Virus record (IMG/VR): IMGVR_UViG_3300050014_000823
Span: 62,001-126,000 of that record
Strand: one strand, 5' to 3'
Length of the DNA stretch: 64,000 bases
The translations under genes and the position numbers were made by a program. Position 1 is the stretch's first letter. Each line of letters begins with the position of its first letter. Shown piece after piece: positions 17,006 through 50,693 of this stretch. A model generated the notes under the pieces. That model had not been told where the DNA came from and did no database searches. It saw nothing but the letters and a program-made list of their open reading frames with translations.

Positions 17006-17737
17006 TTATTTTTTAATAAATTTTGTCCACCCATAATAAGATTTTACACCATTACGATGTAGCTTACTCATTCCTTTCATTCTTAAATCATGTTCAACAC
17101 AAAAATTTGTAAGATTTGTTATGTTTTCATGTACAATTCCTTCTGGACTGATAAAAGAATATGTGTGAGAATAATCTTTCACCCATCCCTTATAATAATA
17201 GATTTCTCCCTTTAATAATAATCCTATTGCACCATTTTCTAATCCATTATCTCTGCAAAATTTTCTGATATTTCTAAAGTCAACAGTTTTATTTTCTGGT
17301 GATATTAGTGTATATGTTTTATTTGCTTTCTCACCCCATGTTTTAGACATCTGTTCCCTAACCGTAGCAGGTATTGTCTTACCCAAATGACTATTTGACA
17401 TTTGTTTTATTGATGCAACACTAAACTGACGACCACTACAATTACCCGCAGTCCAACATATATTATAGTTTAAGTTTGCAGGATAATTCTTTTTTCTGTC
17501 ATCAAGGTATTTCTGTTCTTTAGTCAATATAAATTTATTATCCACATTTTCCAAAACAATAAACTCAAAATTATTTATTCCATGCTTATTATATGCCCTT
17601 TGAAGATGTATATTATGATGATTATTTGCTTTCAAATCTTTCTTATGTCTAATCCAACGAGAGTTACCATTACCAATTGCACTACCAATGTATGTGGCAT
17701 CATTAATTTTATTTACTATAGAATAAACAACTCCCAT
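17006..17737 (-). CDS. GIY-YIG homing endonuclease
   Basis: GVVYSI..YIGSA..RW..H, C-terminal ISPEG..FC repeats. Confidence 0.85.
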   Translation of the reverse strand: MGVVYSIVNKINDATYIGSAIGNGNSRWIRHKKDLKANNHHNIHLQRAYNKHGINNFEFIVLENVDNKFILTKEQKYLDDRKKNYPANLNYNICWTAGNCSGRQFSVASIKQMSNSHLGKTIPATVREQMSKTWGEKANKTYTLISPENKTVDFRNIRKFCRDNGLENGAIGLLLKGEIYYYKGWVKDYSHTYSFISPEGIVHENITNLTNFCVEHDLRMKGMSKLHRNGVKSYYGWTKFIKK

Positions 17738-20745: not shown

Positions 20746-21297
20746 TTACTGTATTAAATCGTTAAACCATTCGTAGTTGTCTTGTGACTTATCTCCCGTT
20801 AAATTATCACATCGATAGAACTTCAAATAAAGTTCCAAACTGTCAAGTGCATTTAAATCACTTATAAGTTTTTCTGCACGTCTTTTTGCTTTGTACCAAT
20901 CTTCATGTCTTCCACCTGCGGACCAAGCATTGTATGCATCATCATGCAATAAAATAACTTGAAGTACGTTTGTGTCATGGCAAAATTTTTCTGCAAATTT
21001 TTTGGCTATAAAACCATGATGGTTGTCACCTTGTTTCGGGAGATTCTGATTGACTTTGTTCTTGAACGTGTCGTGTGTTATAGCAATCAGTCTGAGGCTC
21101 GTCCTGTCTTCATCGTCTTTAAAAAACTTGTCGATGTTACCGAGGACTTCCTCGATATGATAAATGACTGCTCCTTCGGGGTGTCCTGGTCTGCTCTTTC
21201 CGTAATTTGCTCCAACAATAAATTCTTCGTCTTCACAAATAGCCAGTTCTACTCCACTCTCAGGTTTTATTATTTCTTTAATTTCTTGTTTATTCAT
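20746..21297 (-). CDS. HD-domain phosphohydrolase
   Basis: HPEG..YH, ITHDTFK, HH, LHDD, D. Confidence 0.8.
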   Translation of the reverse strand: MNKQEIKEIIKPESGVELAICEDEEFIVGANYGKSRPGHPEGAVIYHIEEVLGNIDKFFKDDEDRTSLRLIAITHDTFKNKVNQNLPKQGDNHHGFIAKKFAEKFCHDTNVLQVILLHDDAYNAWSAGGRHEDWYKAKRRAEKLISDLNALDSLELYLKFYRCDNLTGDKSQDNYEWFNDLIQ

Positions 21298-22078: not shown

Positions 22079-22468
22079 CTATAGTGATATTTCAAATCTA
22101 CTTATCATTTTCAGTATTGTTTCATCGGGAACAGAATGTATATTTTTTGTTGACATTCGATTCTCAACTATAATACTAAATACTTTGTAGTTGAAATTTT
22201 GTGCTAATTTCATATATGGTTGCAATTCTCTTTCGGTTGTCAAAGTGTTTGCAACAATAATGCGTGATGCTTGCTTCTTCATGAATCTCCTGCACTTACG
22301 CTGGCACCATGAGTGAGCTGCACCAATCTTAGCGGAATTCCACAAATACATACCGTCACGCACAAAATAATCATCAGCACAACACACCGCTTTAATGCTA
22401 AGTGCCTCTGCCAATGACGATTTTCCACTGCCTGGAACGCCACGAATCAAAAATAATATCTTTTCCAT
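22079..22468 (-). CDS. Polynucleotide kinase-like P-loop protein (AAA_33)
   Basis: IRGVPGSGKS, ADDYF, AHSWC, HSVP. Confidence 0.85.
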   Translation of the reverse strand: MEKILFLIRGVPGSGKSSLAEALSIKAVCCADDYFVRDGMYLWNSAKIGAAHSWCQRKCRRFMKKQASRIIVANTLTTERELQPYMKLAQNFNYKVFSIIVENRMSTKNIHSVPDETILKMISRFEISL

Positions 22469-22744: not shown

Positions 22745-23221
22745 TTACTTTAATATTTCACGTACTTCCATTAATGCTTTACCTAAGAGGTTCATACCTC
22801 TCCACTGACTTTCATCGAGAACCCTATCGTCTTCCCAATGTAAACCAATTCCCCATATTATATCATAGGGACTTGCCTCAACAATTATCTTATCTTCTGT
22901 TGATTTAAGTAAGGATTTTAAGTCTTTATTTTGGTCGAACTTGGCATAATTAACATCGACCATAGCATCATATCCTGCAGTCAGCCACTCTTTTTGGTCA
23001 AAGTTTTTAACTTTACGACCTAATTTCTTTACAACACTTGGGGTAGGGCAGGCAAGTATCATACTTGCAGATTGACTGTCGTTGAAATACATTGCTTTTT
23101 CCCACATGAATGCCTGTTCACTGTTCTGAAAAATATGCTCTTTGTATTTGAATGTGCATAAGTGCCAATTGGAGAATTCTGAACCCCAAAAGAATACATG
23201 TGTGTCAGTTATTCTTTCCAT
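22745..23221 (-). CDS. NADAR (YbiA-like) family protein
   Basis: FSNW, SEQAFMWEKA, KKLGR, KFDQN, VEASPYDIIWGIG, GMNLLGKALM. Confidence 0.93.
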   Translation of the reverse strand: MERITDTHVFFWGSEFSNWHLCTFKYKEHIFQNSEQAFMWEKAMYFNDSQSASMILACPTPSVVKKLGRKVKNFDQKEWLTAGYDAMVDVNYAKFDQNKDLKSLLKSTEDKIIVEASPYDIIWGIGLHWEDDRVLDESQWRGMNLLGKALMEVREILK

Positions 23222-23806: not shown

Positions 23807-23962
23807 ATGAAGAACAAAGAAACAAAAAAAATGTATTCGCTGAGAATACGTAAAGAACAAATAGAATATTTAAAGGAAGTTGCAGATAAGAATTTCACCA
23901 CCGTGACCCAATATATTCTGGATTTAATAAATGCTGATATGAAAATTGGTAAAAATGTATAA
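23807..23962 (+). CDS. Small ribbon-helix-helix-like protein (51 aa)
   Basis: Manual translation MKNKETKKMYSLRIRKEQIEYLKEVADKNFTTVTQYILDLINADMKIGKNV; overlaps the GIY-YIG start. Confidence 0.65.
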   Translation: MKNKETKKMYSLRIRKEQIEYLKEVADKNFTTVTQYILDLINADMKIGKNV

Positions 23963-24647
23963 AATCTGTGGCATATATAAAATAACATCACCGACAGGTA
24001 GAATTTATATTGGGCAATCGAAGGATATTTCTAAAAGAATTGAAACTTATAGAAATGTTCGGTGTGTCAAACAAATTAGATTATATCGGTCAATTATTAA
24101 ACATGGGTGGGATGCTCATATGTTTGAAGTTATTCATGTGTGTGATGAACTAAAACTTAATGATTTGGAAAAACATTACATTAAATTTTATGATTGCTTT
24201 GATACTCTTAATGGATTAAATTTAACGAGTGGCGGTGATTCGCCCATAGTTTCAACTGAAACGAAAATAAGAATTGGTTTAGCAAGTAAAGGAAGAGTAC
24301 CACACAATAAAGGTAAGTCATTATCTGAAAAAACCAAAGAAAAATTAAGTTTGTCACATATAGGACTAACACCACACAATAAGGGTAAAAAAACATCAAT
24401 TCAAACAAAGTTAGTACAAAGTCAATCCCACATGGGTAATAAAAGTAAATTAGGTAGTTATGAACTATATAATCAAGATAATGAATTGATGTATAAGTTC
24501 AGTGATAAATTTAAAAATAAAATGAAAGAATTTGGATTACCCACATATTCTTTCATTAGGTCATATCAAAATAGCATAAAAATAAACAGAGGAATGTATA
24601 AAAATTGGTATGCGATAAAATTATTAGATGTCAATTCTGTTGCATAA
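23955..24647 (+). CDS. GIY-YIG homing endonuclease (NUMOD3), antisense to neighbours
   Basis: CGIYKITSPTGRIYIGQS..R; PHNKGK repeats. Confidence 0.9.
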   Translation: MYKICGIYKITSPTGRIYIGQSKDISKRIETYRNVRCVKQIRLYRSIIKHGWDAHMFEVIHVCDELKLNDLEKHYIKFYDCFDTLNGLNLTSGGDSPIVSTETKIRIGLASKGRVPHNKGKSLSEKTKEKLSLSHIGLTPHNKGKKTSIQTKLVQSQSHMGNKSKLGSYELYNQDNELMYKFSDKFKNKMKEFGLPTYSFIRSYQNSIKINRGMYKNWYAIKLLDVNSVA

Positions 24648-26385: not shown

Positions 26386-27003
26386 TCATTTTATTTCTTC
26401 TCTTAATAAGTTACCGAAAAACATTTTGTTGTGAAAAATTACTGCACCCTTAATTGTTTCATCGTGATTGAATGCCCATTCGTAATTTGCATATGTCATG
26501 TAGAATTCTTCGAGTTTCATCCATTTAACAACGGCAGTTTCTTTACAAGTGAATTTTTCAATATCAGCGGGAAATTTATCTGGTTCTTTTGAAAAATCAA
26601 GTACATTGAGATATATGTGAGAGATATTCTGACGTTTATCTTCTGATGGTTTATCTTTAGTCCTGTAAGGTTCGCCACTATTATTAAACAACATGTACTT
26701 TTCGTATTCCGGAAGATATAATGAAGTTTCTTCATAAACCTCACGTATCATTGCTTCATGACGGGTTTCATTAAAGTCCAAATAACCACAAGGAATACCA
26801 TATTTATTTGCTTCATCACGCATAGTATTAGACCTCCGGGTTATAAGAATTTGCATACCTACATTAGTAAATGCAAATACTACACCCACAACAGCAGTTG
26901 CTCTACAAACAAAAAAATCTTGCTGAATTTTTAATCCACATTCATCTGAATAGTAGTACTTCACATGTGCATTCGGCTTATTGTTAAACTTCGGTGCTTC
27001 CAT
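26386..27003 (-). CDS. NUDIX hydrolase
   Basis: PCGYLDFNETRHEAMIREVYEET Nudix box; WAFNH. Confidence 0.9.
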   Translation of the reverse strand: MEAPKFNNKPNAHVKYYYSDECGLKIQQDFFVCRATAVVGVVFAFTNVGMQILITRRSNTMRDEANKYGIPCGYLDFNETRHEAMIREVYEETSLYLPEYEKYMLFNNSGEPYRTKDKPSEDKRQNISHIYLNVLDFSKEPDKFPADIEKFTCKETAVVKWMKLEEFYMTYANYEWAFNHDETIKGAVIFHNKMFFGNLLREEIK

Positions 27004-27079: not shown

Positions 27080-27679
27080 ATGATGAATAAAATTTGTGGC
27101 ATATATAAAATAACTTCACCTACCAATAAAATTTATATTGGGCAATCTGTTAATATTTACCGGAGAATTAACCATTATGTGAATATTATGTGTATTGACC
27201 AGCCAAAATTGTATCATTCGTTAGTTAAATATGGATGGAATGCACATATTTTTGAAATCATACATGAATGCGAAGCATCTGAATTAAATAATTTGGAGAA
27301 ACATTACATCAAAATTTTTAATAGTTTTAATACTGAACATGGATTAAATTTAACCGATGGTGGTGAGGGTGCAAATGTTACGCAAGAAACAAGAGAAAAA
27401 ATACGATTATGTAAGATAGGTGTTAGCCGACCAACGAGTATGAGAAAAAAATTAAGTAATACAAAAAGAGGAAAACCCCCACATATTAATTGTAGACATA
27501 AACCAAAGGAATATGAAATTTATAACCAAAATAGTGAATTAATTGCTAAAGGTAAATTTAATATAAAAAATAAATTAGCAGAATTACATCTACCTACATA
27601 TAGTTTTTGTAAAACATATAGAGAAAATACAAAAATACGTAAAGGAAAATATAGGAATTGGTTTGTTGTTAAATTATAA
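27080..27679 (+). CDS. GIY-YIG homing endonuclease, paralogue of 23955-24647
   Basis: CGIYKITSPTNKIYIGQS..R; GLNLTDGGEG. Confidence 0.9.
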   Translation: MMNKICGIYKITSPTNKIYIGQSVNIYRRINHYVNIMCIDQPKLYHSLVKYGWNAHIFEIIHECEASELNNLEKHYIKIFNSFNTEHGLNLTDGGEGANVTQETREKIRLCKIGVSRPTSMRKKLSNTKRGKPPHINCRHKPKEYEIYNQNSELIAKGKFNIKNKLAELHLPTYSFCKTYRENTKIRKGKYRNWFVVKL

Positions 27680-30948: not shown

Positions 30949-30978
30949 ATTATACGAAATTGTCCCGGAAATGTTACA
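30949..30978 (-). promoter_or_regulatory. Phage promoter motif TGTAAC-N18-TATAAT
   Basis: attatacgaaattgtcccggaaatgttaca. Confidence 0.8.
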
Positions 30979-31759
30979 AATCCGGAACAAAAAAATCAAG
31001 AAATATTTTATCCTGAGTAAAAGTAGGACATTCACTACTTACCCAAACAGTCCTCTGATAGGCTTTTTGTTGCAGTTCTGCTTTAACAAAAGGAGTTTCC
31101 ATTTCACGAACTTCTTTCTTAATAAACCTACCTCTTTTTTGCTGTGGGGTAAAGTCATTCCAGTTGATACCCTTTTGAAATATCATTTCCTGCTGTACGT
31201 TCATGTTCTTGCCGTTGAGTTCTCTGTGGCTGTAAAGTGTCTGAGCAACGCTTGAAATACTGTTGCGAACTGTGTCCTGTTGTCTCCAGATGAAGTAGTT
31301 TTTCACTTCATCGTTTGAAGGAATAGTAAACACCCTTGCATCGAATTCGGCAAGTTTCATATCGGCATAATTAAATCCAATAGTATGTTTTAATTGTCGA
31401 ATTGTTCTTAATTGGTTGAACTTAGCGGTAGCTATACTTGCTGCAACACTGACAACCTTCTGCACGTTACCGTCAAACCAGGCATCAGTACCGATTTCAT
31501 CGAAGTCGGTCATAAGAATACTGATTTCGTCACTCTGAACAAATGCGAATTTAGCACCCTGTATGTTCTTGCAGAGATACATTGCAGCTCCATCCATGTC
31601 AGTCATAAGACCTTCATCGAAAGGTTTTTTCATACCTCTGGTATAAGTGTGAAATGCTTTACCGTCAATACGGATAATGCTATATGACCTACGGGGAAGC
31701 CAAGTCTTTGCTCGGTCCTCATAATAGGATTTCATGCGATTTCCAAGTTCATCAACCAT
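30974..31759 (-). CDS. thg1: tRNA(His) guanylyltransferase Thg1-like protein
   Basis: RIDGKAFH, QSDEIS, FDAR, YFIWRQQD..RNS. Confidence 0.93.
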   Translation of the reverse strand: MVDELGNRMKSYYEDRAKTWLPRRSYSIIRIDGKAFHTYTRGMKKPFDEGLMTDMDGAAMYLCKNIQGAKFAFVQSDEISILMTDFDEIGTDAWFDGNVQKVVSVAASIATAKFNQLRTIRQLKHTIGFNYADMKLAEFDARVFTIPSNDEVKNYFIWRQQDTVRNSISSVAQTLYSHRELNGKNMNVQQEMIFQKGINWNDFTPQQKRGRFIKKEVREMETPFVKAELQQKAYQRTVWVSSECPTFTQDKIFLDFFVPDL

Positions 31760-32289: not shown

Positions 32290-32796
32290 TTATTCGAATA
32301 GATTATATGGTTTATTAACTTTTACTACGCCTACTTTAATATAGTTTTTAATATCAAGTATCTTAGCAACATCTTTTAACTTACAAACAAATACCCGGTC
32401 TTGGTCAAAATCAACTTCTTTAAGTTGATTATCTGCACCGTGATAATTTATTTTTATTCTCGTTAACTTGGGAACAACAAATACAATATATCTTCCCGCA
32501 AGCGAACCTAACTTGTAATATCCTTCGAACCGTTCAATACTAACAGTCAAGTATTCGAGTGTTTTAAAAATATCTTCCATGTTAGAAGGTATTAATATTA
32601 CATTTGCACCACCATGATTAGTGTCTTGAAAAATTGTTGCAGAAGTCTGATTGATTTTCGTACACAATGTTTGATTCCAATCAGTCTGATGCATACTTTC
32701 AGGATACTTACTGTCTTTATATCCTTCATAATCCCATGAAACTAAGGGTATGTGAGTCGATAAAAAGTTTTGTAGTTTACTCATTTTACTCTTCAT
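32290..32796 (-). CDS. Stand-alone fragment resembling the C-terminal half of a T4 gp23-like major capsid protein
   Basis: DWNQTLCTKINQTSATI...GGANVI...IFKTLEY...GSLAGRYIVF. Confidence 0.6.
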   Translation of the reverse strand: MKSKMSKLQNFLSTHIPLVSWDYEGYKDSKYPESMHQTDWNQTLCTKINQTSATIFQDTNHGGANVILIPSNMEDIFKTLEYLTVSIERFEGYYKLGSLAGRYIVFVVPKLTRIKINYHGADNQLKEVDFDQDRVFVCKLKDVAKILDIKNYIKVGVVKVNKPYNLFE

Positions 32797-33829
32797 TTTT
32801 AATCAAGAATTTGTTTGAAATTGCTTTAAAGCTAAGTCTGCCTTGATTTTTAAGTTCGTATCGTACAAATACAACACCCTCACGTTCTGTCTGAGGATTA
32901 AGAGCACTTTTACCTTCTGCGTATGCGAGTATTTCATCAACACTGGCAGGAAGTATGTAATTCCTGTCAAGTATAGGAACTGTCTCAATTTTAAGCGTAT
33001 TGCACAGTTCAATCATTTCTTCGTATGGTAAAAATTCATACCTGTCAATGTCGAACATACGGAAAAACCTTACGGTCTGACCTTTGAGTTTATATTTGTT
33101 CTTCTGAATACCCTCACCAATGATTTCACCCTGCAGACCTAAGTTCCTGCCAAGTACACCAAGTTTTTCCTCAAGAAAGTTCTGACGAGCAAATTTCCAA
33201 AATGAATTACTTGGACTTTCGTAGTATTCCCAATTCCTACCGCAAACACCGAACATACCGTCTTTCCAGAAGAAACTTCCACTGCTACCATCGAGTTTTT
33301 CGGTAGTAACAAATGACTGACCTGCATATTCAACAGGTATATGTGGAAGTATCTGAATACGGTCTTCATCGGTAATCATCATGAATGAAGGAAAACCACC
33401 TTTAGCATCACCCGCAAGTTCTGCAGGGATAGGTGCTTCGTATTTTTCAACACCAAGTTCCTCGCTGACATCAAAACCAACAGGACTGTCAGCTAAGTCA
33501 TGTAAGGTAATTCTTGACCTTTCAAGTTCTTCGATATGCCATTTAGTATTAGCATTGAGTATATCCAACGGAAAACAAATGCCCTGGCTTACTTGCCCTC
33601 TCAAGCGTACTGTTCTGATTCTGTAGTTGTTGTGCTTTAAGAATTCAAATTCCTCACGTTTTGGAACGAGACTATCTATTTCCAGATAGACCACTAATTC
33701 ACCTACATGAAACTGATTTTTCTTAACTACGACTTTCCAGCCAAGAATTTGTGCAACCTCGATTGCTTGTGCATCTGGAATAGGACTAAGATTTAAAATC
33801 CTCTGAATTGTTGCTAATTTTCGTGCCAT
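32786..33829 (-). CDS. RNA ligase (DRB0094/Rnl2-like) with N-terminal OB domain
   Basis: RKLATI..SQG; TDEDRIQ, TEKLDGSS, QGE, REGVV, FKAIS. Confidence 0.92.
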   Translation of the reverse strand: MARKLATIQRILNLSPIPDAQAIEVAQILGWKVVVKKNQFHVGELVVYLEIDSLVPKREEFEFLKHNNYRIRTVRLRGQVSQGICFPLDILNANTKWHIEELERSRITLHDLADSPVGFDVSEELGVEKYEAPIPAELAGDAKGGFPSFMMITDEDRIQILPHIPVEYAGQSFVTTEKLDGSSGSFFWKDGMFGVCGRNWEYYESPSNSFWKFARQNFLEEKLGVLGRNLGLQGEIIGEGIQKNKYKLKGQTVRFFRMFDIDRYEFLPYEEMIELCNTLKIETVPILDRNYILPASVDEILAYAEGKSALNPQTEREGVVFVRYELKNQGRLSFKAISNKFLIKNEE

Positions 33830-38947: not shown

Positions 38948-38977
38948 ATTATACGTAATTAATTCAAAAAGGTTTCT
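38948..38977 (-). promoter_or_regulatory. Phage promoter motif (degenerate upstream box)
   Basis: attatacgtaattaattcaaaaaggtttct. Confidence 0.6.
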
Positions 38978-39196
38978 AATATTCCCATTTTTTTCCGAGA
39001 ATTTTTCTCGTAATTCCATTACCTGTGCTTCTCAGTAGAATCCAGATAACTAAAAGCGGGAAGAATACTGCTGACAATACTCTCTCGTATTCATTGCTGA
39101 TGTTGATTCCTTCTACTTGGTCAAGTAAGTTGCCAAGCACGATACCTATAAGCAGGTATACGATAATGCCTAAAATAATTAATGTCGTAATCATAG

Positions 39197-39961
39197 TTAA
39201 AAATTTATAAATAAGTATTCTCTGAACCATCTGTGAAACATCTTCGGAAGTATCCGCAAGTCTGCAAAACCATAAAGTCCGCAGGAGAAGAAATCATGTG
39301 CCTCTATAATAAAGGTATCGCCTAAATGGTCCACAAATTTATCAGTATCTTTAATCCCGATATCAAGTGTATAGGCGATTGGCGCATTTTCGTCTTTCTC
39401 ATATTTGGCAATCATTTCCATGAGTATTGGCATATACGGGAATAGTGTGAAGTCACCAGCATAATTCTGTAAACCAACGAGTTTTCCCTCATATACGAAT
39501 GCACGCCATTCACTGTCAATATCAATTGTTTCGGAAATCTGATAATTGCCTTCTGGGACATCAATATCGTCATCAACAATCTGACAAAATCCTTTAATTT
39601 GGTCGTTGGATTTTACGAATTTTTTCCCGACAATTTCTTTTTCTGTGCCATTAAATACAAAGCGTTTTGTGTATTTAAAGTCGAGTAATTCTTCCGGGAT
39701 ATTAATGGGTTCAACAGGGTAGCCATAAAAGTGGTTAATGAACTCTGAGACAAACTCTACCGAACCAATTGGCACATAGCCTTTATGAAATTTTTTGAAC
39801 TCTAATTTTGTGAACTTGCCAGAGTAAAACTCTGTATTAATGAACTTATATTTAATTTCTTTGTTGTTGTGAAACCAATTGCAATATTCAATGGCTTCAA
39901 GTAGCGTAAATGCGAAGTCATGTTTGACCTCTTTAAAACATTTTTGTATTAAGAATTTCAT
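39197..39961 (-). CDS. ATP-grasp protein (DUF4343/R2K-like)
   Basis: PIGSVEFV, FVKS, SEWRAFV, TLDIG, IEAHDFFSCGLYG. Confidence 0.8.
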   Translation of the reverse strand: MKFLIQKCFKEVKHDFAFTLLEAIEYCNWFHNNKEIKYKFINTEFYSGKFTKLEFKKFHKGYVPIGSVEFVSEFINHFYGYPVEPINIPEELLDFKYTKRFVFNGTEKEIVGKKFVKSNDQIKGFCQIVDDDIDVPEGNYQISETIDIDSEWRAFVYEGKLVGLQNYAGDFTLFPYMPILMEMIAKYEKDENAPIAYTLDIGIKDTDKFVDHLGDTFIIEAHDFFSCGLYGFADLRILPKMFHRWFREYLFINF

Positions 39962-40000
39962 ATTTGTATAAATTTTATCACACAAATGTAATGATAAATT

Positions 40001-41131
40001 TTAATTATGCAAGAATCCTTTGTCCGATTCGCTAACTTTAACATTAAATATTCCCAACCAATTAGCTAATTGTGTAGGATAGAGGCTTTGCAACACTCCT
40101 TGTTTCGTTACAGGTATGATACTTTCTTGAACTTGGTCCAGACAAGTGAAAACAATTGTTTTCTTAGAGTCGGGATTATGATACTTATCACACTTTAATG
40201 CATATTTAAGCAGGTCGTAATCCAATACAGACTTTCTGAAAATTCCTTGATATCCTGTGTCAACATTTGTCTCTTTTGGATTTGGAGTAATATAGCTGAT
40301 ATCCATACCCTCATTGGTCATTGGACCATTACCGTGACGTGTCTGATAGGCACGAGTAACATAATAGGTTTCAATAGCTTTATCGGTCAGACCGTTGTTA
40401 CGAATGAATTCCATTGCATTTCTGGAAGTACAGTAGCTTCTCGTGACGTTTGGGAAGAAGCCGTATTGCATATCAAGCAAAATGCCCTGTCCACCTTCAA
40501 AGATTAAGTCACAACCAAATTTGTCGAGTTGTTTGAAACTTTCAACAATATCGTATTTTTCAACAAATTGTGTACAGGCATCAACAAAATTATCGTAGTA
40601 CTGTTGTGCTTTTGAGTTTAATGGAGTCGTATATTTATAATAATTCATGATGGCTTTGAGTTTAGCATCACGAATTACAGGAAATAACAAATCCCGGACA
40701 TACAGATGATAATGGTCTTCGTTTCTCTGAATGGTATTGCCAAAACCTACACCAACAGTACCGTGACCATTGGATAAATCGTGGTTGATGTTCTGTATTA
40801 TATCAAATGGAGTAGTAACCATTGCATTGGCATTGTAATAGACTTTAGGCACAATACCATAATCGACAAGTGCCCGACCTTCCTTAATAACAGCAACAGG
40901 ATTTACGGTGCAATATTCAGTCCAATAAGTCGGTACACCTTTAAGGCTACCACTACCAAAGTTTGAAAATGCATGAAGTAGGTCACCTTCTCGGACAGTA
41001 TGTCCAACTTGATGTCCACCATTGAATCTTACAACTAATGAACCCGAAGGTTGATTCTTGCAAAGCGAATTAACAGTTGCACCTTTACCTTCATCACCAT
41101 ATCCAAGACCGACTACCACCATGATTTTCAT
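40001..41131 (-). CDS. purA: Divergent adenylosuccinate synthetase-like protein
   Basis: GYGDEGKG, RFNGGHQVGHTV, FEGGQGILLD, TRAYQTRHGNGP. Confidence 0.85.
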   Translation of the reverse strand: MKIMVVVGLGYGDEGKGATVNSLCKNQPSGSLVVRFNGGHQVGHTVREGDLLHAFSNFGSGSLKGVPTYWTEYCTVNPVAVIKEGRALVDYGIVPKVYYNANAMVTTPFDIIQNINHDLSNGHGTVGVGFGNTIQRNEDHYHLYVRDLLFPVIRDAKLKAIMNYYKYTTPLNSKAQQYYDNFVDACTQFVEKYDIVESFKQLDKFGCDLIFEGGQGILLDMQYGFFPNVTRSYCTSRNAMEFIRNNGLTDKAIETYYVTRAYQTRHGNGPMTNEGMDISYITPNPKETNVDTGYQGIFRKSVLDYDLLKYALKCDKYHNPDSKKTIVFTCLDQVQESIIPVTKQGVLQSLYPTQLANWLGIFNVKVSESDKGFLHN

Positions 41132-41135
41132 ATTC

Positions 41136-41879
41136 TTATGTTTTTAATTTATATTTCCAAATATATTTACCGGATGTTTTTATTCTTCCTTTTAAACAAG
41201 CACAAATGCTGCTTTTATTAATGTTTAATTTTTTTGATGCTTCAATAATGCCATTCCAATTACGTATAAATTTTTCATTTAAGTCATATTGTGAAATTTT
41301 CACTAATATTTGTTTTCTTTGTTTTTCAATTTCTTTTTTTGTTTTCTTTCTTCCTAATTGCGATTTATTGTGTCCACTAATAAATCTTTTTGAAGATGTA
41401 ATCATACAAATGAAAGATTTTTGACAACCACAAACACAAATTCTTTCTTCACGTGGAATATATCGTGGACTATCTTTGCCTGATTTATGATGACAAATGG
41501 GACAATCACAATCTACTTTATGTCCTCTTTCTTCTGTTGTTTGACCAATATGTGCCAATGACATATTCAATTTTGATTTATCCGTATGTTTCACACCTAA
41601 AGGACTACCTGCAATTTTTGCAAAATTAAATGTTGGAGATAAATTGTCAATCCAATACTGTTCTCTTGTAATTAAATTTTCTTTTTTATCTACAACCTCA
41701 ATAATTTCAAAAATAAATGCATCTTCACCATATTTATTCCAAGAATTTTGAATAAATTGATTTTTATGTTTATTTTTTCTCAAAGAACTAATATGACCCC
41801 ATTTTCGATTTTTAAAATTAACTGCTGAACCAATATAGAAGTCATTTGTTATTAAATTGGTTATTTTATAAATTACCAT
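41136..41879 (-). CDS. GIY-YIG homing endonuclease (NUMOD1)
   Basis: VIYKITN..YIGSA..R, REQYWID, C-terminal NUMOD1. Confidence 0.9.
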   Translation of the reverse strand: MVIYKITNLITNDFYIGSAVNFKNRKWGHISSLRKNKHKNQFIQNSWNKYGEDAFIFEIIEVVDKKENLITREQYWIDNLSPTFNFAKIAGSPLGVKHTDKSKLNMSLAHIGQTTEERGHKVDCDCPICHHKSGKDSPRYIPREERICVCGCQKSFICMITSSKRFISGHNKSQLGRKKTKKEIEKQRKQILVKISQYDLNEKFIRNWNGIIEASKKLNINKSSICACLKGRIKTSGKYIWKYKLKT

Positions 41880-42479
41880 AATACATATATTTCATATAAA
41901 TACTACGGAAATCAAAACCTAACACAATTTAAATATTTTCATATAAACTTATTTCCTCACCATAAAGCCATCAGAATATTTTTCCGAAATTACAGTTATT
42001 AACATTTGAACATCCCTACCACAACATTTTCCACTTTTTAAAGTATTAATAAAATGTTCTACGCCATTTGCATCTACAACTGCTATAATGTTTTCATCTG
42101 AATTAGCATAATCTTCTAAATCACTTGATATTGTTGAATCTTCAAATGCTCCATTATCTGCACATGAAAACATAGTTTGTGAACCAAAATATTCTTGTAG
42201 TTTGGTATCTTTTAATTTACATAAATAATAACCCATATATTATTCTTTTTTAAGTTCAACCATGATTTTACCCGCACGTAATGGGCACTCAGGATGTAAG
42301 TAGGGTTTACTGTGGTAAACAAGATTTTCTGCTTTCTGGTCAAAGTACAGACCATCTTTAACAGCATTGCAGTTTGAGGTTAACATTTCATCCTGTAACT
42401 CGTAGAAAGGACATTCTCTTCCACAAAACTCTACCTTTATAATTTCATTGATAAGTTTGGACATACAATAATTTTCTCG

Positions 42480-42509
42480 ATTATACGTAAATAAAAATAA
42501 AATGTTACA
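42480..42509 (-). promoter_or_regulatory. Phage promoter motif TGTAAC-N18-TATAAT
   Basis: attatacgtaaataaaaataaaatgttaca. Confidence 0.8.
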
Positions 42510-42545
42510 AAAAAAGGGACATATTTTCACATGTCCCTTTTTTTT
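42509..42545 (-). terminator. Intrinsic terminator
   Basis: A7-GGGACAT..ATGTCCC-T8. Confidence 0.8.
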
Positions 42546-42557
42546 GATTAAGCCGGA

Positions 42558-43475
42558 TTAAAGTTTAATTATACCTTCGTCACCTGCTGCAACGATTGTT
42601 GTCGTTACTTTTGCAAGTGCGTTAGTTACCATACCTGCGGTATGTGCATCAAACTTACTCGTAACTGTTTTGATATCAACACCATGCTGTACAGCGATTA
42701 ATGTTGCAATAGTTGCGCAAATTGCGTGGTAATCGTTCAGCACGATAAGCCTTTCGCCAACCATATCATTCCAGTAATTCAGAATCCTTGGGTCGTCACG
42801 ATAAGAACCTTCGTTTACGTGAATGTGGTAAACGTTATAGAGTCTCTGTGCTTCTTCAAGAACCTGTTTGTCGGTAATCTCTTCATCCTGGTTGTAACCC
42901 AAAATGACTTTGAGTCTGTCTGAACTTACACAATCCCAACTTTTTTCGTCACCGATGGTGAAAAGAAAGCCTTTCTGATTACGTTTTTCGAAGCAGTCGA
43001 TTGAGGTATGACGACCTGCAACAAGCCAAGCAAGAAGATATGATTCCCTGTCCTGTGCACCGCCACCACGTTGAAGTGCGATACCTGTCAGCCATTTATC
43101 AAGTTCCTCTGTTCCAGATTCGAATTGACCAACCTGAATCGGAGTATCAATGCAATGATGGTCATTGATTGTGCCGAAAAGAACCTGTGGATGCTGTACA
43201 CCATTGTCAATGATAGTGTTCATGAGGGTCGGAAGTTCGTTTTTAACAACGTCTTCGGGTATTCTACCCATACTTCCGGTATCATCAAGAAATACCATAA
43301 TTGCGAGAGATTCGGGATGAATATCACTGTCACGTGATTCCCTTACTGTAAGATTTACTGGAAGCATGTCGGTATTTGCAGTTTTACTGAAAATATCGTC
43401 AGCATCCTTACTTGCATAACCCTTACTTGAAGACAAGTTGGTGTATGCGTCATCTGACCATTTACTGTAACCCAT
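42558..43475 (-). CDS. vWA-like (MIDAS) domain protein
   Basis: VFLDDTGSMG, GQFES, GGG..ESY, FTIGDE; start MGYSKWS. Confidence 0.8.
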   Translation of the reverse strand: MGYSKWSDDAYTNLSSSKGYASKDADDIFSKTANTDMLPVNLTVRESRDSDIHPESLAIMVFLDDTGSMGRIPEDVVKNELPTLMNTIIDNGVQHPQVLFGTINDHHCIDTPIQVGQFESGTEELDKWLTGIALQRGGGAQDRESYLLAWLVAGRHTSIDCFEKRNQKGFLFTIGDEKSWDCVSSDRLKVILGYNQDEEITDKQVLEEAQRLYNVYHIHVNEGSYRDDPRILNYWNDMVGERLIVLNDYHAICATIATLIAVQHGVDIKTVTSKFDAHTAGMVTNALAKVTTTIVAAGDEGIIKL

Positions 43476-43479
43476 GTGT

Positions 43480-43650
43480 TTACTCTGTTTTAGAGGTTTC
43501 CACGTTATCAGTCGTAACTTCTGTTGCAACTTCTGTTGCTACCTCTGTTTTGACTTCTGTTTCTGCTGTTTTTGCTACTTCAGGTGCAGAATCCTGTGCT
43601 TCAGCCATTTCTTCGAATGACCCAAGATTTGAGAACTTGTCTAATCCCAT
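43480..43650 (-). CDS. 56-aa acidic low-complexity peptide with TEVA repeats
   Basis: Manual translation MGLDKFSNLGSFEEMAEAQDSAPEVAKTAETEVKTEVATEVATEVTTDNVETSKTE. Confidence 0.65.
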   Translation of the reverse strand: MGLDKFSNLGSFEEMAEAQDSAPEVAKTAETEVKTEVATEVATEVTTDNVETSKTE

Positions 43651-43725
43651 GTTTGATAAAAATTAATTGTTAGTACTAAAAATAATTATTTCAAAAAACA
43701 AATGTATATATTAAATTTTAATTTC

Positions 43726-44613
43726 CTACAAATCCAGTGGATAAAAATTCTTCTTGAAGTTATTTGCAAGTAAATCCCGATACTGTTTATAGTCATCTTT
43801 GCCATTCTGATGCTTCGTCAGAAGAAATGTTAAAACTGCTTGATTTACTTCCTTATCCATTTTCAATTTCGTTCCTGCTGCTGATTTATCACCTAACAAA
43901 TATAGTGCAATTTTCTTACAGAGTTCCAAATCAATGTCCTCAGTAGCAATCTTTTTCACAAAAAGGTCGGTAGGATACCACATTTTATACTTGGCACTGA
44001 TGGTTTCGGCTTTCTTGCCTAACTTGGTCATATGATAGAAACTAATCACTATAATACCATGAGTCTCAGGCACTACGAAGACTGTTGTTGGGTTTAATCC
44101 CATATGAGTATAGCCAACTTGACCAAACCACAATGAAATTTCGAACATCCTGGAAAACAGCCAATTAACGTGATGTTGTGGTAATTTCTGTCCTGTTAAG
44201 GGCACTGCACGGTCTTTCAGATTTATTACGAGTTTGTCTTTTTCTAAGACCATACTTTCTGGCAGGTATCTTTTGAAATTGTCTGACGCTTTGTCATGAA
44301 GTGCCATTAAAGTATTGTAATTATTGACTGATTTAGTCAGCAGCTTACGATTGGCATCAGTCACGACATACTCAATGCGCTTTTCGAATACCTTGAATGG
44401 TCCGGTTTCATCAACATAAGGAGTACCATTTTCGATGACATCCTTATAGTGATTCATAATTGCCATTGCGTTGCTTGCGCCACTAAGACTACAAGCATCT
44501 GGGTGAATTAATTTACTGTAACGCAAATAATCCTTTTTCCAATCATCGGTAGAAAAAATGTCTGAGGGTTTCTTTGACTTAATTAGTTTGTCAACGAGTT
44601 CAACGTCTGTCAT
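43726..44613 (-). CDS. J-domain-like (HPD) plus protein-kinase-fold (pseudokinase) protein
   Basis: YSKLIHPD; WLFSRMFE..GYTHMGLNPTTVFVVPETHG. Confidence 0.65.
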   Translation of the reverse strand: MTDVELVDKLIKSKKPSDIFSTDDWKKDYLRYSKLIHPDACSLSGASNAMAIMNHYKDVIENGTPYVDETGPFKVFEKRIEYVVTDANRKLLTKSVNNYNTLMALHDKASDNFKRYLPESMVLEKDKLVINLKDRAVPLTGQKLPQHHVNWLFSRMFEISLWFGQVGYTHMGLNPTTVFVVPETHGIIVISFYHMTKLGKKAETISAKYKMWYPTDLFVKKIATEDIDLELCKKIALYLLGDKSAAGTKLKMDKEVNQAVLTFLLTKHQNGKDDYKQYRDLLANNFKKNFYPLDL

Positions 44614-45209
44614 TATGTTCGCTTTATTGAGTAGTTAAAAAATCTTTCTATTCTATATACTATATTGGGTGTTAGTCCACTATATGCATCACACTGAAAA
44701 AAGTTATATTGTTGCCAGAGCAACATATCCGAGTCATCGTCAATGATTGCATAACGGCTGAATTCGTGGCTGTGTACACCAAACCATTTTTGACAATTAT
44801 CATCCAGCCATTTGTATATTTCAACACCACGTATTCTTTCATTGCAATATCCGGTTTTATCTATTATTGTAAATGTACCGCCACAATAATTGAATATTTC
44901 CTGTAATTCTTCCGGAGTCCAACCACTTCTCATTGATGCTGAGAGGACTACAGCACTGTTGGTTCTTTCACAAAGTCCATTAAGCATGTCCATACGCATC
45001 GGACACATTTCACCTTTATAGTAATCCCACTTAGAAATTTCCTTTGTCTTAAGCATCTTCCGGAGATATTTCTTCACTGTCTTATAGAAAGGTATACCAC
45101 TATATTGTGTCAAGTGTTTATACCTTTCAGTATAAAATAACTGACAATTCAAAACACCATCAACGTCCAAAAACACCAAATTTTGAAATTTATTAAGTTC
45201 TGGTTCCAT
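44613..45209 (-). CDS. HAD domain protein (RNA-repair 'Swiss army knife' type)
   Basis: FLDVDGVLN, VLSASMR, RGVEI, IIDDDSD, GLT. Confidence 0.8.
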   Translation of the reverse strand: MEPELNKFQNLVFLDVDGVLNCQLFYTERYKHLTQYSGIPFYKTVKKYLRKMLKTKEISKWDYYKGEMCPMRMDMLNGLCERTNSAVVLSASMRSGWTPEELQEIFNYCGGTFTIIDKTGYCNERIRGVEIYKWLDDNCQKWFGVHSHEFSRYAIIDDDSDMLLWQQYNFFQCDAYSGLTPNIVYRIERFFNYSIKRT

Positions 45210-46002
45210 TTTTATATATATTATATTTACGCATTAAATAATATTTAAAATTATTGTCACCATAAATGTAATTTAAAAATTTATCTGCACCTTTATATAG
45301 ATACATTTTCCACACATTTGGCTTATTCTTAGAGACTTTGGTTCTTGACAATTCATTAATACCCATATCGGTCAATAAAATACCAATAAAGTCTAACACT
45401 TCTTTGGTTGAAATGAGACTTATTCGCAACTTTCCTTGATTTCGAAAACCAACTGACCCGTCACCATCAAATAATCCCGCAATAAAATAAGAATAATATT
45501 CTTCATCAATCTTAGGAAATTCCAATGCATTGGTTTTATTTGATGTTATGCCCAAATTAATTAAATGTTCTACAAACAACTCATTACCAATTTGAATTGA
45601 ATATCCGGTATATGTTTTATTGGTTCGCTTATCGAAATTAGTTCTTATGCTAATAGCATGTTCTGCACCAATAGCTTTCTTAAAATTTTCAATAACAATT
45701 AAATCTTTTGATATTAATGAAACTTTATTATTACTTTTCTTAATATTGCCATCCGCACAAATAAATCCAAGCCAATATGCTTTATCCGGAGAATTGATTT
45801 CCTTGAAATAGTCTATACTAAGTGCAAGATGACTCATATTCAATCTACTCTTTTTTTGTTTGGAGATACCGTTTCTCATTAAAATTAATCGAATTCCTGG
45901 TTGAGTTCTTCCGTACTTCAATGCAATTGATTTTTGTGACATTGTTTTGGATAATTCAATAATTTCCATTTCCAATGCTTTAGTTGCAGGTCTTGTTGTC
46001 AT
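45193..46002 (-). CDS. LAGLIDADG homing endonuclease
   Basis: AYWLGFICADG and FIAGLFDGDG. Confidence 0.9.
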   Translation of the reverse strand: MTTRPATKALEMEIIELSKTMSQKSIALKYGRTQPGIRLILMRNGISKQKKSRLNMSHLALSIDYFKEINSPDKAYWLGFICADGNIKKSNNKVSLISKDLIVIENFKKAIGAEHAISIRTNFDKRTNKTYTGYSIQIGNELFVEHLINLGITSNKTNALEFPKIDEEYYSYFIAGLFDGDGSVGFRNQGKLRISLISTKEVLDFIGILLTDMGINELSRTKVSKNKPNVWKMYLYKGADKFLNYIYGDNNFKYYLMRKYNIYKNGTRT

Positions 46003-46564: not shown

Positions 46565-47008
46565 GGTGTGAAGTATGGAAGAAATTAGAAAACATATCGA
46601 AGAAAATCTCAACGATGCCAAAAGAGAGTATGATAATATCTACTATCATTATGAGCAAGCCAAGGAAGCCATGCAACGTGCTAAAACGGAAATGGAATCC
46701 CTACAAGAATCATGTGTGAAGGTGAGAAATAAAATGGTATATTTTGAAAAATTATTAAATGAACTAAATGATAATGAAATATGAACGAAGTAGTAAAAAT
46801 TAACGAAGGAGCATGGGTATTGATAGGTTTTGTTGCATTCATTGCAGTTATATTCATATTATTATACATGAATGCTAATGGTGCATTTAAGAATAAAAAC
46901 ACTAAAAGTGCATCAGATGGATTTGCTAAAGAATTTAAAAAAAGACCAGATGAAAAACATCACACGACTTAATTGAAGATACTCAGTATTTATATTAAAT
47001 TTTCAACC

Positions 47009-47650
47009 ATGTACATATATAAAATAACCAATAATATTAACCAAAAAATTTACATCGGGAAACACGCATCCAAAAGAAAGTGTTATTGGGGTTCAGGTAA
47101 ATTAATAAAATTGGCAATTAAAAAACATGGAATAGAAAATTTTACCAAAGAAATTATTGAAACTTGTGACAATGAAGAGCAATTATCAATTCGTGAAATT
47201 TTTTGGATAGAATATTATGGCTCAAGAAACAGATTAATTGGGTATAATATTACAGAGGGTGGTGACGGTAATAAAGCAATATGTAATGGATTTTGGCGTG
47301 ATAAAAAATTGAGTGATGAACATAGAAAAAACATATCTAAGCATCATGCAGATGTCACCGGAGATAAAAATCCAATGTTTGGAAAGACACAAGCTAATTC
47401 GGTAAAAGAGAATTTAAAGAAGATAAAAACCGGTTTAAATTATTCAAACGAAACTAAATTAAAACATTCAAAAAGAACAAAAGGTAGTAATAATCCAAAT
47501 TCCAAGTTAAATGATGTAATTGTATTAAATATAAGAAAAGAATATAGTGATGGAATAAGCACAAATGACCTTGCAAAAAAATATGGTGTAAATAAACCGT
47601 GTATATGGAAAATAGTACACAATTATACTTGGAAACATTTAAAACAATAA
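47009..47650 (+). CDS. GIY-YIG (Seg-like) homing endonuclease
   Basis: YIYKITN..YIGKH..YWGSG, REIFWI, GYNITEGG, NUMOD3 and terminal HTH. Confidence 0.9.
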   Translation: MYIYKITNNINQKIYIGKHASKRKCYWGSGKLIKLAIKKHGIENFTKEIIETCDNEEQLSIREIFWIEYYGSRNRLIGYNITEGGDGNKAICNGFWRDKKLSDEHRKNISKHHADVTGDKNPMFGKTQANSVKENLKKIKTGLNYSNETKLKHSKRTKGSNNPNSKLNDVIVLNIRKEYSDGISTNDLAKKYGVNKPCIWKIVHNYTWKHLKQ

Positions 47651-50129: not shown

Positions 50130-50693
50130 ATGGAAACCGCAGATACAAAAAGATTAGGTCACGTAATGGTAGACCTTGAAACAATGGGAAACAAAAGTAA
50201 TTCTGTTATTTGCTCACTCGGTGCTGTCGAATTTGACATCAACACAGGTGAACTTGGCAGAGAATTCTACACAAGAGTCGATATGCAATCCTGCCTTGAC
50301 AGAGGCTTAATTGTCAATGCTGATACTATTGAATGGTGGCTCATGCAGAGCGAAAGTGCACGTAAGAAAGTTACAGAAGGTATTGGTAAGAATCTTGCAC
50401 AGGCACTCTATGAATTCAAACTTTATCTCGAACAACTCGGTGCGAACACTGTTCAACTTTGGGGGAATGGTGTACGTTTTGACATGGGTATTCTCGAAGA
50501 TGCTTACAGAGCATGCAACTTAAAAGAACCCTGGAATTTCAGATGCGAAAGAGACGTGAGAACACTTGTTTCTTTTGCTCCAGAAGTAAAAGACCACTTT
50601 CCAAAATTCGGTACTGAGCACAATCCAATTGACGACTGCAAGTATCAAATCGGCTATTGCACAGCGATTTGGCAAAACTTAAAAGGAATTTAA
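50130..50693 (+). CDS. DEDDh 3'-5' exonuclease
   Basis: MVDLETMG, WW, WGNG..FD, RDVRT, HNPIDD. Confidence 0.88.
   Translation: METADTKRLGHVMVDLETMGNKSNSVICSLGAVEFDINTGELGREFYTRVDMQSCLDRGLIVNADTIEWWLMQSESARKKVTEGIGKNLAQALYEFKLYLEQLGANTVQLWGNGVRFDMGILEDAYRACNLKEPWNFRCERDVRTLVSFAPEVKDHFPKFGTEHNPIDDCKYQIGYCTAIWQNLKGI

Follow-up and report, generated by a model that had tools for sequence, protein, structure and literature searches.

A PurA-family enzyme with an altered aspartate loop forms a conserved cassette with a vWA protein and exchangeable adaptors in phages and in bacterial NAD/ADP-ribose operons

To our knowledge, the chemistry of PurA, in which the 6-oxo group of a purine is activated at the expense of guanosine triphosphate (GTP), has so far been found in two jobs, the synthesis of adenosine monophosphate (AMP) by adenylosuccinate synthetase (PurA; EC 6.3.4.4; PF00709) and the synthesis of the Z base of phages by PurZ. 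Here we analyse a PurA-like enzyme, referred to as PurAL, encoded in a 64,000-nucleotide stretch of viral DNA (the window) that corresponds to bases 62,001-126,000 of the IMG/VR record IMGVR_UViG_3300050014_000823. PurAL is encoded together with a stand-alone vWA protein and an upstream adaptor, and this cassette is a three-gene system that occurs widely, is as yet uncharacterised, centres on a PurA-family enzyme and is tied by its genomic context to nicotinamide adenine dinucleotide (NAD) and ADP-ribose biology. PurAL shares with PurA the fold and family, as judged by sequence, and the elements GDEGKG, Asp13, His41, Gln224, TR.G.G and Asp333, but differs from it in the aspartate loop, in T129/R143 and S240, in about 55 C-terminal residues, in its pairing with the vWA protein and in being an extra copy. 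Like PurZ, PurAL is a phage-borne PurA homologue and both belong to PHROG 1211; unlike PurZ, it shows kinship with bacterial-type PurA, has no DatZ/MazZ companion, occurs in bacterial operons and has lost the aspartate site.

Other described systems resemble further parts of the cassette. MoxR AAA+ proteins and vWA proteins form remodeller pairs such as CbbQ-CbbO, NorQ-NorD, RavA-ViaA and the chelatase BchI-BchD. By analogy, the cassette may be likened to these pairs in having a stand-alone vWA adaptor with a metal ion-dependent adhesion site (MIDAS) encoded beside the enzyme that it would serve and beside a factor for an ATP-driven motor; in contrast to them, it contains no AAA+ gene, and the proposed motor is the host DnaK, reached through a J-domain. 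The adaptor of the window has its J-domain N-terminal to a kinase fold, as in the human oncogenic fusion DNAJB1-PRKACA (J-PKAc; Foldseek rank 19, TMq 0.51), which is an active kinase, whereas the phage protein is dead as a kinase and the resemblance is architectural only. The gene families that surround the bacterial copies of the cassette were assigned by Iyer et al. (2022) to an NAD+-ADP-ribose network that includes NAD-dependent RNA end repair (PMC9503650), and section 3.8 of that study describes NrtR/WYL-regulated ADP-ribosylglycohydrolase (ARG) systems with vWA 'chaperones', predicted to counter ADP-ribosylation. The bacterial cassettes share with these ARG-centred systems the Nudix-wHTH regulator, ARG, Macro, NADAR, the calcineurin-like phosphatase and a stand-alone vWA protein, but the text of Iyer et al. 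contains no PurA-like enzyme, no J-domain kinase and no counterpart of the alternative adaptor u111 described below, and the phage copy has no nearby ARG or regulator. Prs-like and NAMPT-like families, known from the NARP1 and NARP2 pathways (Osterman et al. 2024, bioRxiv 10.1101/2024.02.11.579819), also flank the bacterial cassettes, but vWA and PurAL take part in neither pathway and the phage has no NAMPT. Full-text literature searches found no publication describing the cassette; the NARP3 and RyDEP papers were checked and are unrelated to it.

In the window, the three genes of the cassette are the following:

43726..44613, minus strand: J-domain fused to a catalytically dead protein-kinase fold (J-kinase, adaptor type 1), recognised by its HPD motif, by hhalign and by an AlphaFold2 (AF2) model

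42558..43475, minus strand: stand-alone vWA protein with an intact MIDAS (phrog_2971; AF2 model)

40001..41131, minus strand: PurA-like enzyme, PurAL (PF00709, 137.6 bits; phrog_1211)

The conservation of the cassette was surveyed through the vWA alignment with iterated profiles, covering 80 of the 372 matching IMG/VR loci and 80 of the at least 469 matching bacterial species genomes; the phage set comprised 83 loci and the bacterial set 80, giving 163 in total. The vWA gene is followed by the PurAL gene in 75 of the 83 phage loci and 72 of the 80 bacterial loci, the misses being contig ends, and the two genes are co-directional and adjacent in 150 of the 163. Spacers between them measure 20 nt or less in 57 of these 150 loci, 4-nt overlaps occur in 13, and wider gaps are in most cases due to inserted endonuclease genes, as is the one in the window. 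This linkage is far beyond chance and shows that vWA and PurAL form an obligate pair, often with translational coupling, in phages and bacteria alike. Almost always, the conserved unit is the vWA-PurAL core together with one of two interchangeable, unrelated upstream adaptors. The pair is also found in 219 records of cultured phages (about 200 cluster-C mycobacteriophages, 10 Rhizobium phages and 6 Vibrio phages). A megablast search with the 9-kb cassette region against 50,697 phage records gave no match, the close relatives being metagenomic contigs only. The best bacterial matches to the phage vWA protein, with 50-60% identity, come from Saprospiraceae, Hymenobacter and Mucilaginibacter (loci L084-L101); all of them are Bacteroidota, which hints at this phylum as that of the phage host.

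These data bear on an initial annotation of the window, made from the sequence alone, which had grouped five co-oriented genes (the J-kinase, an acidic peptide, the vWA protein, the PurA-like enzyme and an ATP-grasp ligase) into one module and had pointed to a similar J-kinase/vWA/PurA trio in bacteria. All five genes are present on the minus strand, and that trio does occur in Bacteroidota, Chloroflexota and Actinomycetes. Gene linkage is conserved, as the 150 loci demonstrate, but only for the core and its adaptor: the adaptor is swapped, and the acidic peptide, a HAD phosphatase and the ATP-grasp ligase are restricted to one jumbo-phage lineage.

PurAL matches Pfam Adenylsucc_synt above the gathering threshold of 27 over residues 5-319 only, that is, over profile positions 1-320 of 416. 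We mapped its residues by aligning 137 distinct family members to E. coli K-12 PurA. The family keeps G12-D-E-G-K-G17, H41, Q224, TR.G.G, D333 and an S414-like serine, and the GDEGKG P-loop with the catalytic Asp13, Lys16 and His41 is present in the PurAL of the window and in at least 95% of the 137 members. The aspartate loop GATTGRRRR, which contains T300, T301, R303 and R304, is replaced across the 137 members by the consensus N..N..QG-.FR, and reads TNVDTGYQG-IFR in the window. Additionally, N38 is changed to Q, T129 to C or V (GTTG at this site being GTVG in the window) and S240 to a conserved R. Position R143 shows no conservation, and PurAL lacks about 55 of the C-terminal residues of PurA. 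Judged from the alignment, PurAL keeps the residues with which PurA binds GTP and transfers the phosphoryl group to the purine 6-oxo group, and has lost the threonines and arginines with which PurA binds aspartate.

The profile scores are in line with this map. PurAL reaches 114.8 bits with the NCBIfam purA equivalog NF002223 (cut-off 402), 92.3 bits with TIGR00184 (cut-off 395.55) and 28.4 bits with the PurZ model NF038379 (cut-off 300). Among solved structures, the nearest are bacterial PurAs, with E about 1e-21, and the archaeal-type short PurA (2d7u, 5k7x) follows with E 1.4e-5. In the five carrier bacteria tested, a canonical purA was found elsewhere in the genome in every case (503-549 bits), compared with 74-127 bits for the vWA-linked copy. 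Since the change of the aspartate loop is a conserved trait of the family, the score lies below the cut-offs and carriers have a separate purA, PurAL is not a plain adenylosuccinate synthetase. By sequence, it is predicted to be neither PurA nor PurZ in function, and it is not a housekeeping copy, even though homologues are named 'adenylosuccinate synthetase' in database records and '2-aminooxy adenylosuccinate synthetase' in PHROG 1211 and some GenBank records. The motif changes listed in the initial annotation (GDEGKG kept, the altered aspartate loop, GTTG to GTVG) were all recovered in the comparison with E. coli PurA, its view that the enzyme is not one of plain AMP synthesis gains from the family-wide loop change, the low equivalog score and the purA genes of the five carriers, and the GTP dependence that it proposed is consistent with the retention of the GTP-specific D333 and of the S414-like serine.

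For the vWA gene, the correct start codon is the ATG at 43475 (MGYSKW) instead of the TTG at 43529. The AF2 model of the protein has a predicted local distance difference test score (pLDDT) of 90.9, and the top Foldseek matches are the integrin beta-I domain and the vWA domains of RGLG1/2 and SpaC (probability 1.0, E about 1e-5). The MIDAS residues D64-x-T66-x-S68 and D176 are invariant, as is E144, and the position of the MIDAS Thr appears to be taken by an invariant G138-G139...E144 segment, a variant form of the site. No Pfam family matches the protein at E < 0.1; its language-model neighbours carry VWA_4, with cosine values of 0.81-0.83. The family comprises 962 clusters at 50% identity (E <= 1e-30), and its members in cultured phages are always annotated as 'hypothetical'. 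A Met-Gly start is found in essentially all 163 homologues, from phages to Actinomycetes, with exactly MG in 148 and an internal MG start in the rest, and the first 7 residues form a free coil in the AF2 model. The Met-Gly is followed by an aromatic residue at position 6 (MG[YSH]xxW/Y). Co-folding of vWA and PurAL, each with its own alignment and with rows matched by locus order, gave a score of 0.00 with controls not run, which counts neither for nor against binding.

The HPD motif of the J-kinase, at residues 37-39, lies between helices 25-36 and 46-62 of the model and is invariant in 44 distinct homologues. The family profile aligned to the J-domain of E. coli DnaJ (residues 1-77) with an hhalign probability of 80.6% and E 1.3e-5, covering helix II, HPD and helix III; the Pfam DnaJ model gave no match at E < 0.1. 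The AF2 model (pLDDT 95.6) matches the kinases Rsk2, YopO, Chk1 and PDK1 in Foldseek with probability 1.0 and E about 1e-6. The protein of the window has HMG for HRD, as already read in the initial annotation, SFY for DFG, a T in place of the catalytic-loop N and no beta3 lysine; the missing lysine and the HMG and SFY replacements identify it as a pseudokinase. A longer subtype, found in mycobacteriophages, Chloroflexota and Actinomycetes, keeps the Lys, the catalytic-loop Asn and the D of 'IDW' and has HGA. No Hsp70 gene was found in the phage genome, and a J-domain would consequently have to act on the host DnaK. The J-kinase precedes vWA in 55 viral and about 30 bacterial loci, the bacterial carriers being Saprospiraceae, Hymenobacter, Mucilaginibacter, Dyadobacter, Niastella, Chloroflexota and Actinomycetes.

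The second adaptor, u111, is a helical protein of about 115 aa with the consensus GAFxxSLKRNNxxIRxDRA...MLDLSPT...RYxYLFG. It precedes vWA in 20 of the 26 IMG/VR loci that have no J-kinase and in 48 of the 80 bacterial loci; examples are L137:8662-8997 among bacteria and L057, L062, L064, L066 and L073 among viruses. No Pfam match was obtained for u111, and its profile gave no meaningful match to the PDB sequences. Homology between u111 and the J-kinase is not supported (hhalign probability 1.1%). The C-terminal eIkLEiAKxRYxYLFG of u111 resembles residues 226-243 of the J-kinase (IDLELAKRTAxYLLGD), a similarity that is not statistically significant. In Vibrio phage Va1 (L002:4246-4959) and Rhizobium phage TM39 (L001:3702-4529), the gene upstream of vWA is neither the J-kinase nor u111; it represents a third type of 237-275 aa that contains RKVDGVVWDMMTGKIG.

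The bacterial neighbours of the cassette were clustered and representatives were scanned against Pfam. In Flavobacterium, the operon reads NrtR-Prs-u111-vWA-PurAL-NADAR-(u139-Macro-DUF4291)-Tpt1/KptA-Metallophos-ARG-NAMPT, and in Chryseobacterium NrtR-NADAR-2OG oxygenase-u111-vWA-PurAL-Macro-DUF4291-SIR2-ARG-Tpt1-Metallophos. A metagenome-assembled genome of Pricia has the minimal form NrtR-Prs-u111-vWA-PurAL-NAMPT, and Mucilaginibacter has NrtR-Prs-NAMPT-ARG-Jkin-vWA-PurAL, with the J-kinase as adaptor. Among the 80 bacterial loci, a set weighted towards Flavobacteriia, NrtR was found in 40, Tpt1 in 36, NADAR in 35, ARG in 31 and a calcineurin-like phosphoesterase in 29. The embedding in co-directional NAD-salvage and ADP-ribose operons, headed by a gene for a regulator of the ADP-ribose-sensing NrtR family, which the initial annotation did not see, is the strongest functional clue, and the position of the bacterial copies in such operons indicates that the cassette is probably not devoted to plain AMP synthesis. 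A conflict-type setting is plausible. In 22 of the 80 bacterial loci, such as L111, L124, L125 and L146 from Chryseobacterium and Tenacibaculum, the gene directly preceding u111-vWA-PurAL encodes a 2-oxoglutarate (2OG)-Fe(II) oxygenase (PF13640). A hydroxylase adjoining a putative oxo-aminating enzyme may hint at a two-step C-H amination.

In the window, the phage copy lies in an auxiliary region of RNA-repair and NAD/ADP-ribose genes:

30974-31759, 32786-33829, 22079-22468, 22745-23221, 26386-27003 and 50130-50693, minus strand (exoribonuclease, plus strand): RNA-repair/NAD set, made up of a Thg1-like guanylyltransferase, an RNA ligase with a PHA02142 OB domain, an AAA_33 kinase, NADAR, Nudix and an Rv2179c-like 3'-5' exoribonuclease

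An HD gene is also among these neighbours. In cultured phages, NADAR lies 2 kb upstream of the cassette in Vibrio phage Va1, and PRTase-like and NMNAT/Nudix genes are found nearby in Rhizobium phage TM39. Neither ARG nor an NrtR-type regulator was found among the window genes scanned or by local profiles over the whole phage genome, where these profiles gave one weak Nudix-level match at about 186 kb.

The reading that we favour, to which we assign a probability of roughly 0.45, is that PurAL ligates a purine nucleotide, in a GTP-dependent reaction, to an acceptor that is not aspartate, working with the vWA adaptor and the host DnaK within the NAD/ADP-ribose network. In this model, PurAL would transfer a phosphoryl group from GTP to the 6-oxo position of a nucleotide of the hypoxanthine or guanine type, and the loss of the 5'-phosphate clamp T129/R143 would open the 5' side to a larger substituent, for example an ADP-ribose-like tail. 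The activated purine would then be passed to a nucleophile other than aspartate. The MIDAS of the vWA protein may bind to an acidic residue, either in PurAL or in a client, as the vWA partners of MoxR AAA+ remodellers do, while the J-domain with its invariant HPD would recruit the host DnaK as the remodelling motor, and u111 would fill the same role as an alternative adaptor. The phage cassette could in this way maintain or rewire adenine- and NAD-linked nucleotide pools, or process an ADP-ribose-related product, during infection.

Several points weigh against this reading, whose structural and genomic claims are much firmer than its chemical claims. The MoxR-like comparison for vWA and DnaK is reasoning from known vWA systems and not a result, and the J-domain assignment depends on the HPD motif, the model and the 80% hhalign probability. 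A strong NAD/ADP-ribose link is confined to Bacteroidota, numerous bacterial trios lying in unrelated and variable neighbourhoods, and in phage loci genes of this kind are only sporadic neighbours; a search for NAMPT (PF04095) gave no match in the 299-kb phage genome. Moreover, the bacterial counts are not independent events, since the sample was anchored on vWA similarity and is dominated by Chryseobacterium and Flavobacterium.

Alternatively, PurAL may be an ammonia-dependent AMP synthase that converts inosine monophosphate (IMP), GTP and NH3 to AMP, bypassing aspartate and adenylosuccinate lyase (PurB); it would then replenish the adenylate and ATP pools that the ATP-consuming enzymes of NAD rebuilding (Prs or Adps-like, NAMPT) draw on after depletion of NAD and ATP. 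The loss of the carboxylate-binding residues with all phosphotransfer residues kept fits a small acceptor, Prs and NAMPT enclose the cassette in operons under NrtR, and the phage encodes no PurB; E. coli PurA itself can accept hydroxylamine instead of aspartate. However, a simple metabolic enzyme leaves the obligate MIDAS vWA protein and the DnaK-recruiting adaptor unexplained, and the host already has PurA and PurB. The strong conservation of the N..N..QG.FR loop also speaks for a pocket that is not empty but holds a specific ligand, and we regard this explanation as unlikely.

The Met-Gly start, shared by essentially every vWA homologue and every orthologue of the acidic peptide of the window, raises the idea that the acceptor is a protein N-terminus or a lysine, for example the Gly that removal of Met would expose on the vWA protein or the acidic peptide. 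The modified protein would then carry AMP, joined through its N6, as a covalent tag of +330.04 Da. The free coil modelled for the N-terminal 7 residues of vWA and the remodelled aspartate pocket of PurAL would suit such a reaction, but the argument is circumstantial throughout, most cassettes lack the acidic peptide and the co-fold of vWA and PurAL returned no verdict. In addition, we know of no precedent for this chemistry on proteins, and none of the tests run pointed to the acidic peptide, or any peptide, as the amine substrate that the initial annotation had suggested. We consider modification of proteins by PurAL improbable. Its fuller version, in which PurAL would activate IMP or GMP with GTP and couple C6 to the N-terminal Gly or a Lys of a vWA-presented protein while DnaK loads and releases the client, is somewhat less probable again; under it, the acceptor would be marked by the Met-Gly with which the vWA proteins and the acidic peptide begin, and, if true, it would reveal a previously unknown N6-linked nucleotide tag on proteins.

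A proposal as improbable as protein modification in general is that PurAL acts on hypoxanthine or guanine in RNA or DNA, for example re-aminating inosine made by a deaminase toxin, as part of an NAD-dependent RNA-repair toolkit. The phage neighbours (RNA ligase, Thg1-like protein, AAA_33 kinase, NADAR, HAD_SAK_2, R2K and DNA ligase) could be read in this way, as could Tpt1/KptA, Macro, NADAR and Metallophos in bacteria, which are tied to NAD-dependent RNA end repair (PMC9503650), and the loss of the T129/R143 clamp could admit a polymer. Against this, Pfam, PHROG and NCBIfam scans detected no nucleic-acid-binding domain in any cassette protein, and the synteny with repair genes is limited to one phage lineage.

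That PurAL is an ordinary auxiliary metabolic gene, a divergent canonical adenylosuccinate synthetase that boosts AMP for replication amid unrelated neighbours, would agree with its Pfam match and with the annotation of its homologues; the family-wide loss of T300, T301, R303 and R304, a score well below one third of the equivalog cut-off, the separate canonical purA of the carriers and a vWA coupling in about 150 loci that is not due to chance make this very improbable. A PurZ-type enzyme making 2-aminoadenine (Z) for a modified phage genome is hardly credible, for the PurZ-like label of PHROG 1211 and of some GenBank records is opposed by the 28.4-bit score, by the bacterial PurAs as nearest structures, by the use of aspartate by PurZ too, for which PurAL has lost the pocket, and by the occurrence of the same enzyme in bacterial chromosomes under NrtR with no MazZ/DatZ-like partner adjacent. 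The sole MazG match is a 52-aa frame at genome position 282 kb, about 180 kb away from the cassette, and the HD protein at window positions 20746-21297 lies 19 kb from it and is barely at the Pfam cut-off.

PurAL represents a third, large clade of the PurA family with a rebuilt acceptor pocket and obligate protein partners; its partner vWA family is present in at least 469 bacterial species and hundreds of phage contigs. The position of the cassette between NAD-salvage genes and genes that remove ADP-ribose places it in the NAD-centred conflict between phages and hosts, an active field in which new phage counter-measures are still emerging. Identifying the substrate would reveal either a novel nucleotide that serves as metabolite or signal, or a novel reaction of repair or of protein modification, and such work would also provide an example of a vWA adaptor whose partner is Hsp70 instead of an AAA+ protein. 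Tractable models are available in Flavobacterium johnsoniae, in the Vibrio and Rhizobium phages, and in cluster C mycobacteriophages grown on M. smegmatis.

The source virus record measures 299,144 bp, has about 34% GC and is estimated to be 91% complete. Around the three genes of the cassette, in the minus-strand transcription order HAD, J-kinase, acidic open reading frame (ORF), vWA, two orphans, GIY-YIG, PurAL and R2K ATP-grasp, the window contains the following features:

44613..45209, minus strand: HAD_SAK_2-type HAD phosphatase (Pfam PF18143, 61.8 bits; phrog_1818)

43480..43650, minus strand: 56-aa acidic protein with a TEVA-repeat tail (isoelectric point 4.08; 12-nt repeat; orthologues)

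42240..42530, minus strand: 96-aa orphan ORF, part of an insertion between vWA and PurAL (no homologue or database match)

41949..42236, minus strand: 95-aa orphan ORF in the same vWA/PurAL insertion (sub-threshold Arm-repeat match only)

41136..41879, minus strand: GIY-YIG/NUMOD1 homing endonuclease (Pfam GIY-YIG and NUMOD1; phrog_314)

39197..39961, minus strand: R2K-clade ATP-grasp ligase (Pfam R2K_2, 61.7 bits; R2K_3)

38976-39230, minus strand: 84-aa membrane ORF with two predicted hydrophobic helices

37548..38924, minus strand: ATP-dependent DNA ligase, a syntenic neighbour outside the cassette (Pfam DNA_ligase_A_M; phrog_114, E 3.8e-104)

The HAD phosphatase, the acidic peptide and the ATP-grasp ligase were rejected as core members, since neither distant phages nor any of the bacterial cassettes carry them. 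The HAD and J-kinase genes share one base, at the stop of the former and the start of the latter, and the HAD gene precedes the J-kinase in about 20 related jumbo-phage contigs, abutting it in about 12 and lying within about 500 nt in the rest. In the acidic ORF, a 12-nt unit present 3.8 times encodes the TEVA repeats. A homologue fills the gap between J-kinase and vWA in more than 30 related phage contigs, with the consensus MGxxKxxxxSFEEMA followed by a variable acidic tail; it is confined to the jumbo-phage lineage nearest the window and is absent where J-kinase and vWA abut. All orthologues start with Met-Gly, and a strictly conserved, exposed N-terminal glycine is common to the vWA homologues and the acidic peptides. 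Most of the orthologues end in Glu (...KTE, ...PAE, ...TPE), and the R2K ATP-grasp, which is RimK-related, co-occurs in the same lineage; from these sequence features, a RimK-type C-terminal glutamylation of the acidic peptide is conceivable.

The ATP-grasp gene follows PurAL in 31 related jumbo-phage contigs only. Its product scores above the R2K_2 gathering threshold of 26.2, and its true start is likely to be the ATG at 39961 rather than 39985, judging by relatives that begin with MKFLIQKC. The DNA ligase gene lies downstream of PurAL and ATP-grasp in 21 related contigs, with about 9 close orthologues of 50-74% identity. At its 3' end, the ATP-grasp gene is overlapped over 34 nt by the 84-aa ORF, for which no homologue was found in the related contigs. 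The remaining descriptions in the initial annotation, namely the acidic TEVA peptide, the MIDAS vWA protein, the kinase fold with an HPD motif and the ATP-grasp ligase, all agree with the profiles, models and orthologues given above, while the two orphan ORFs and the GIY-YIG gene between vWA and PurAL, and the HAD gene upstream, had escaped it.

No homologue of the 96-aa or the 95-aa orphan ORF was found in the 83 phage loci (L001-L083), and the former gave no match in Pfam, PHROG, PADLOC or NCBIfam. The PADLOC defence models matched none of the eight proteins, and a scan for promoter and terminator consensus sequences over 37-47 kb gave counts no higher than in shuffled sequence. The region of the window contains many small genes and several homing endonucleases, as expected of an auxiliary part of a jumbo-phage genome. 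Homologues of the GIY-YIG gene lie between vWA and PurAL in about 10 further phage contigs, suggesting this junction as a hot spot for homing, and at the contig end or elsewhere in 5 more loci. Five GIY-YIG-type genes were detected in the window, one by Pfam (41136-41879) and four by the N-terminal YxITN...YIG motif (17006-17737, 23946-24647, 27080-27679 and 46973-47650). Additionally, positions 45193-46002 encode a 269-aa ORF with two motifs judged by eye to be LAGLIDADG-like (WLGFICADGNI and IAGLFDGDGSV), whose homologues in related contigs are found at other positions and on the other strand, as expected of a mobile endonuclease.

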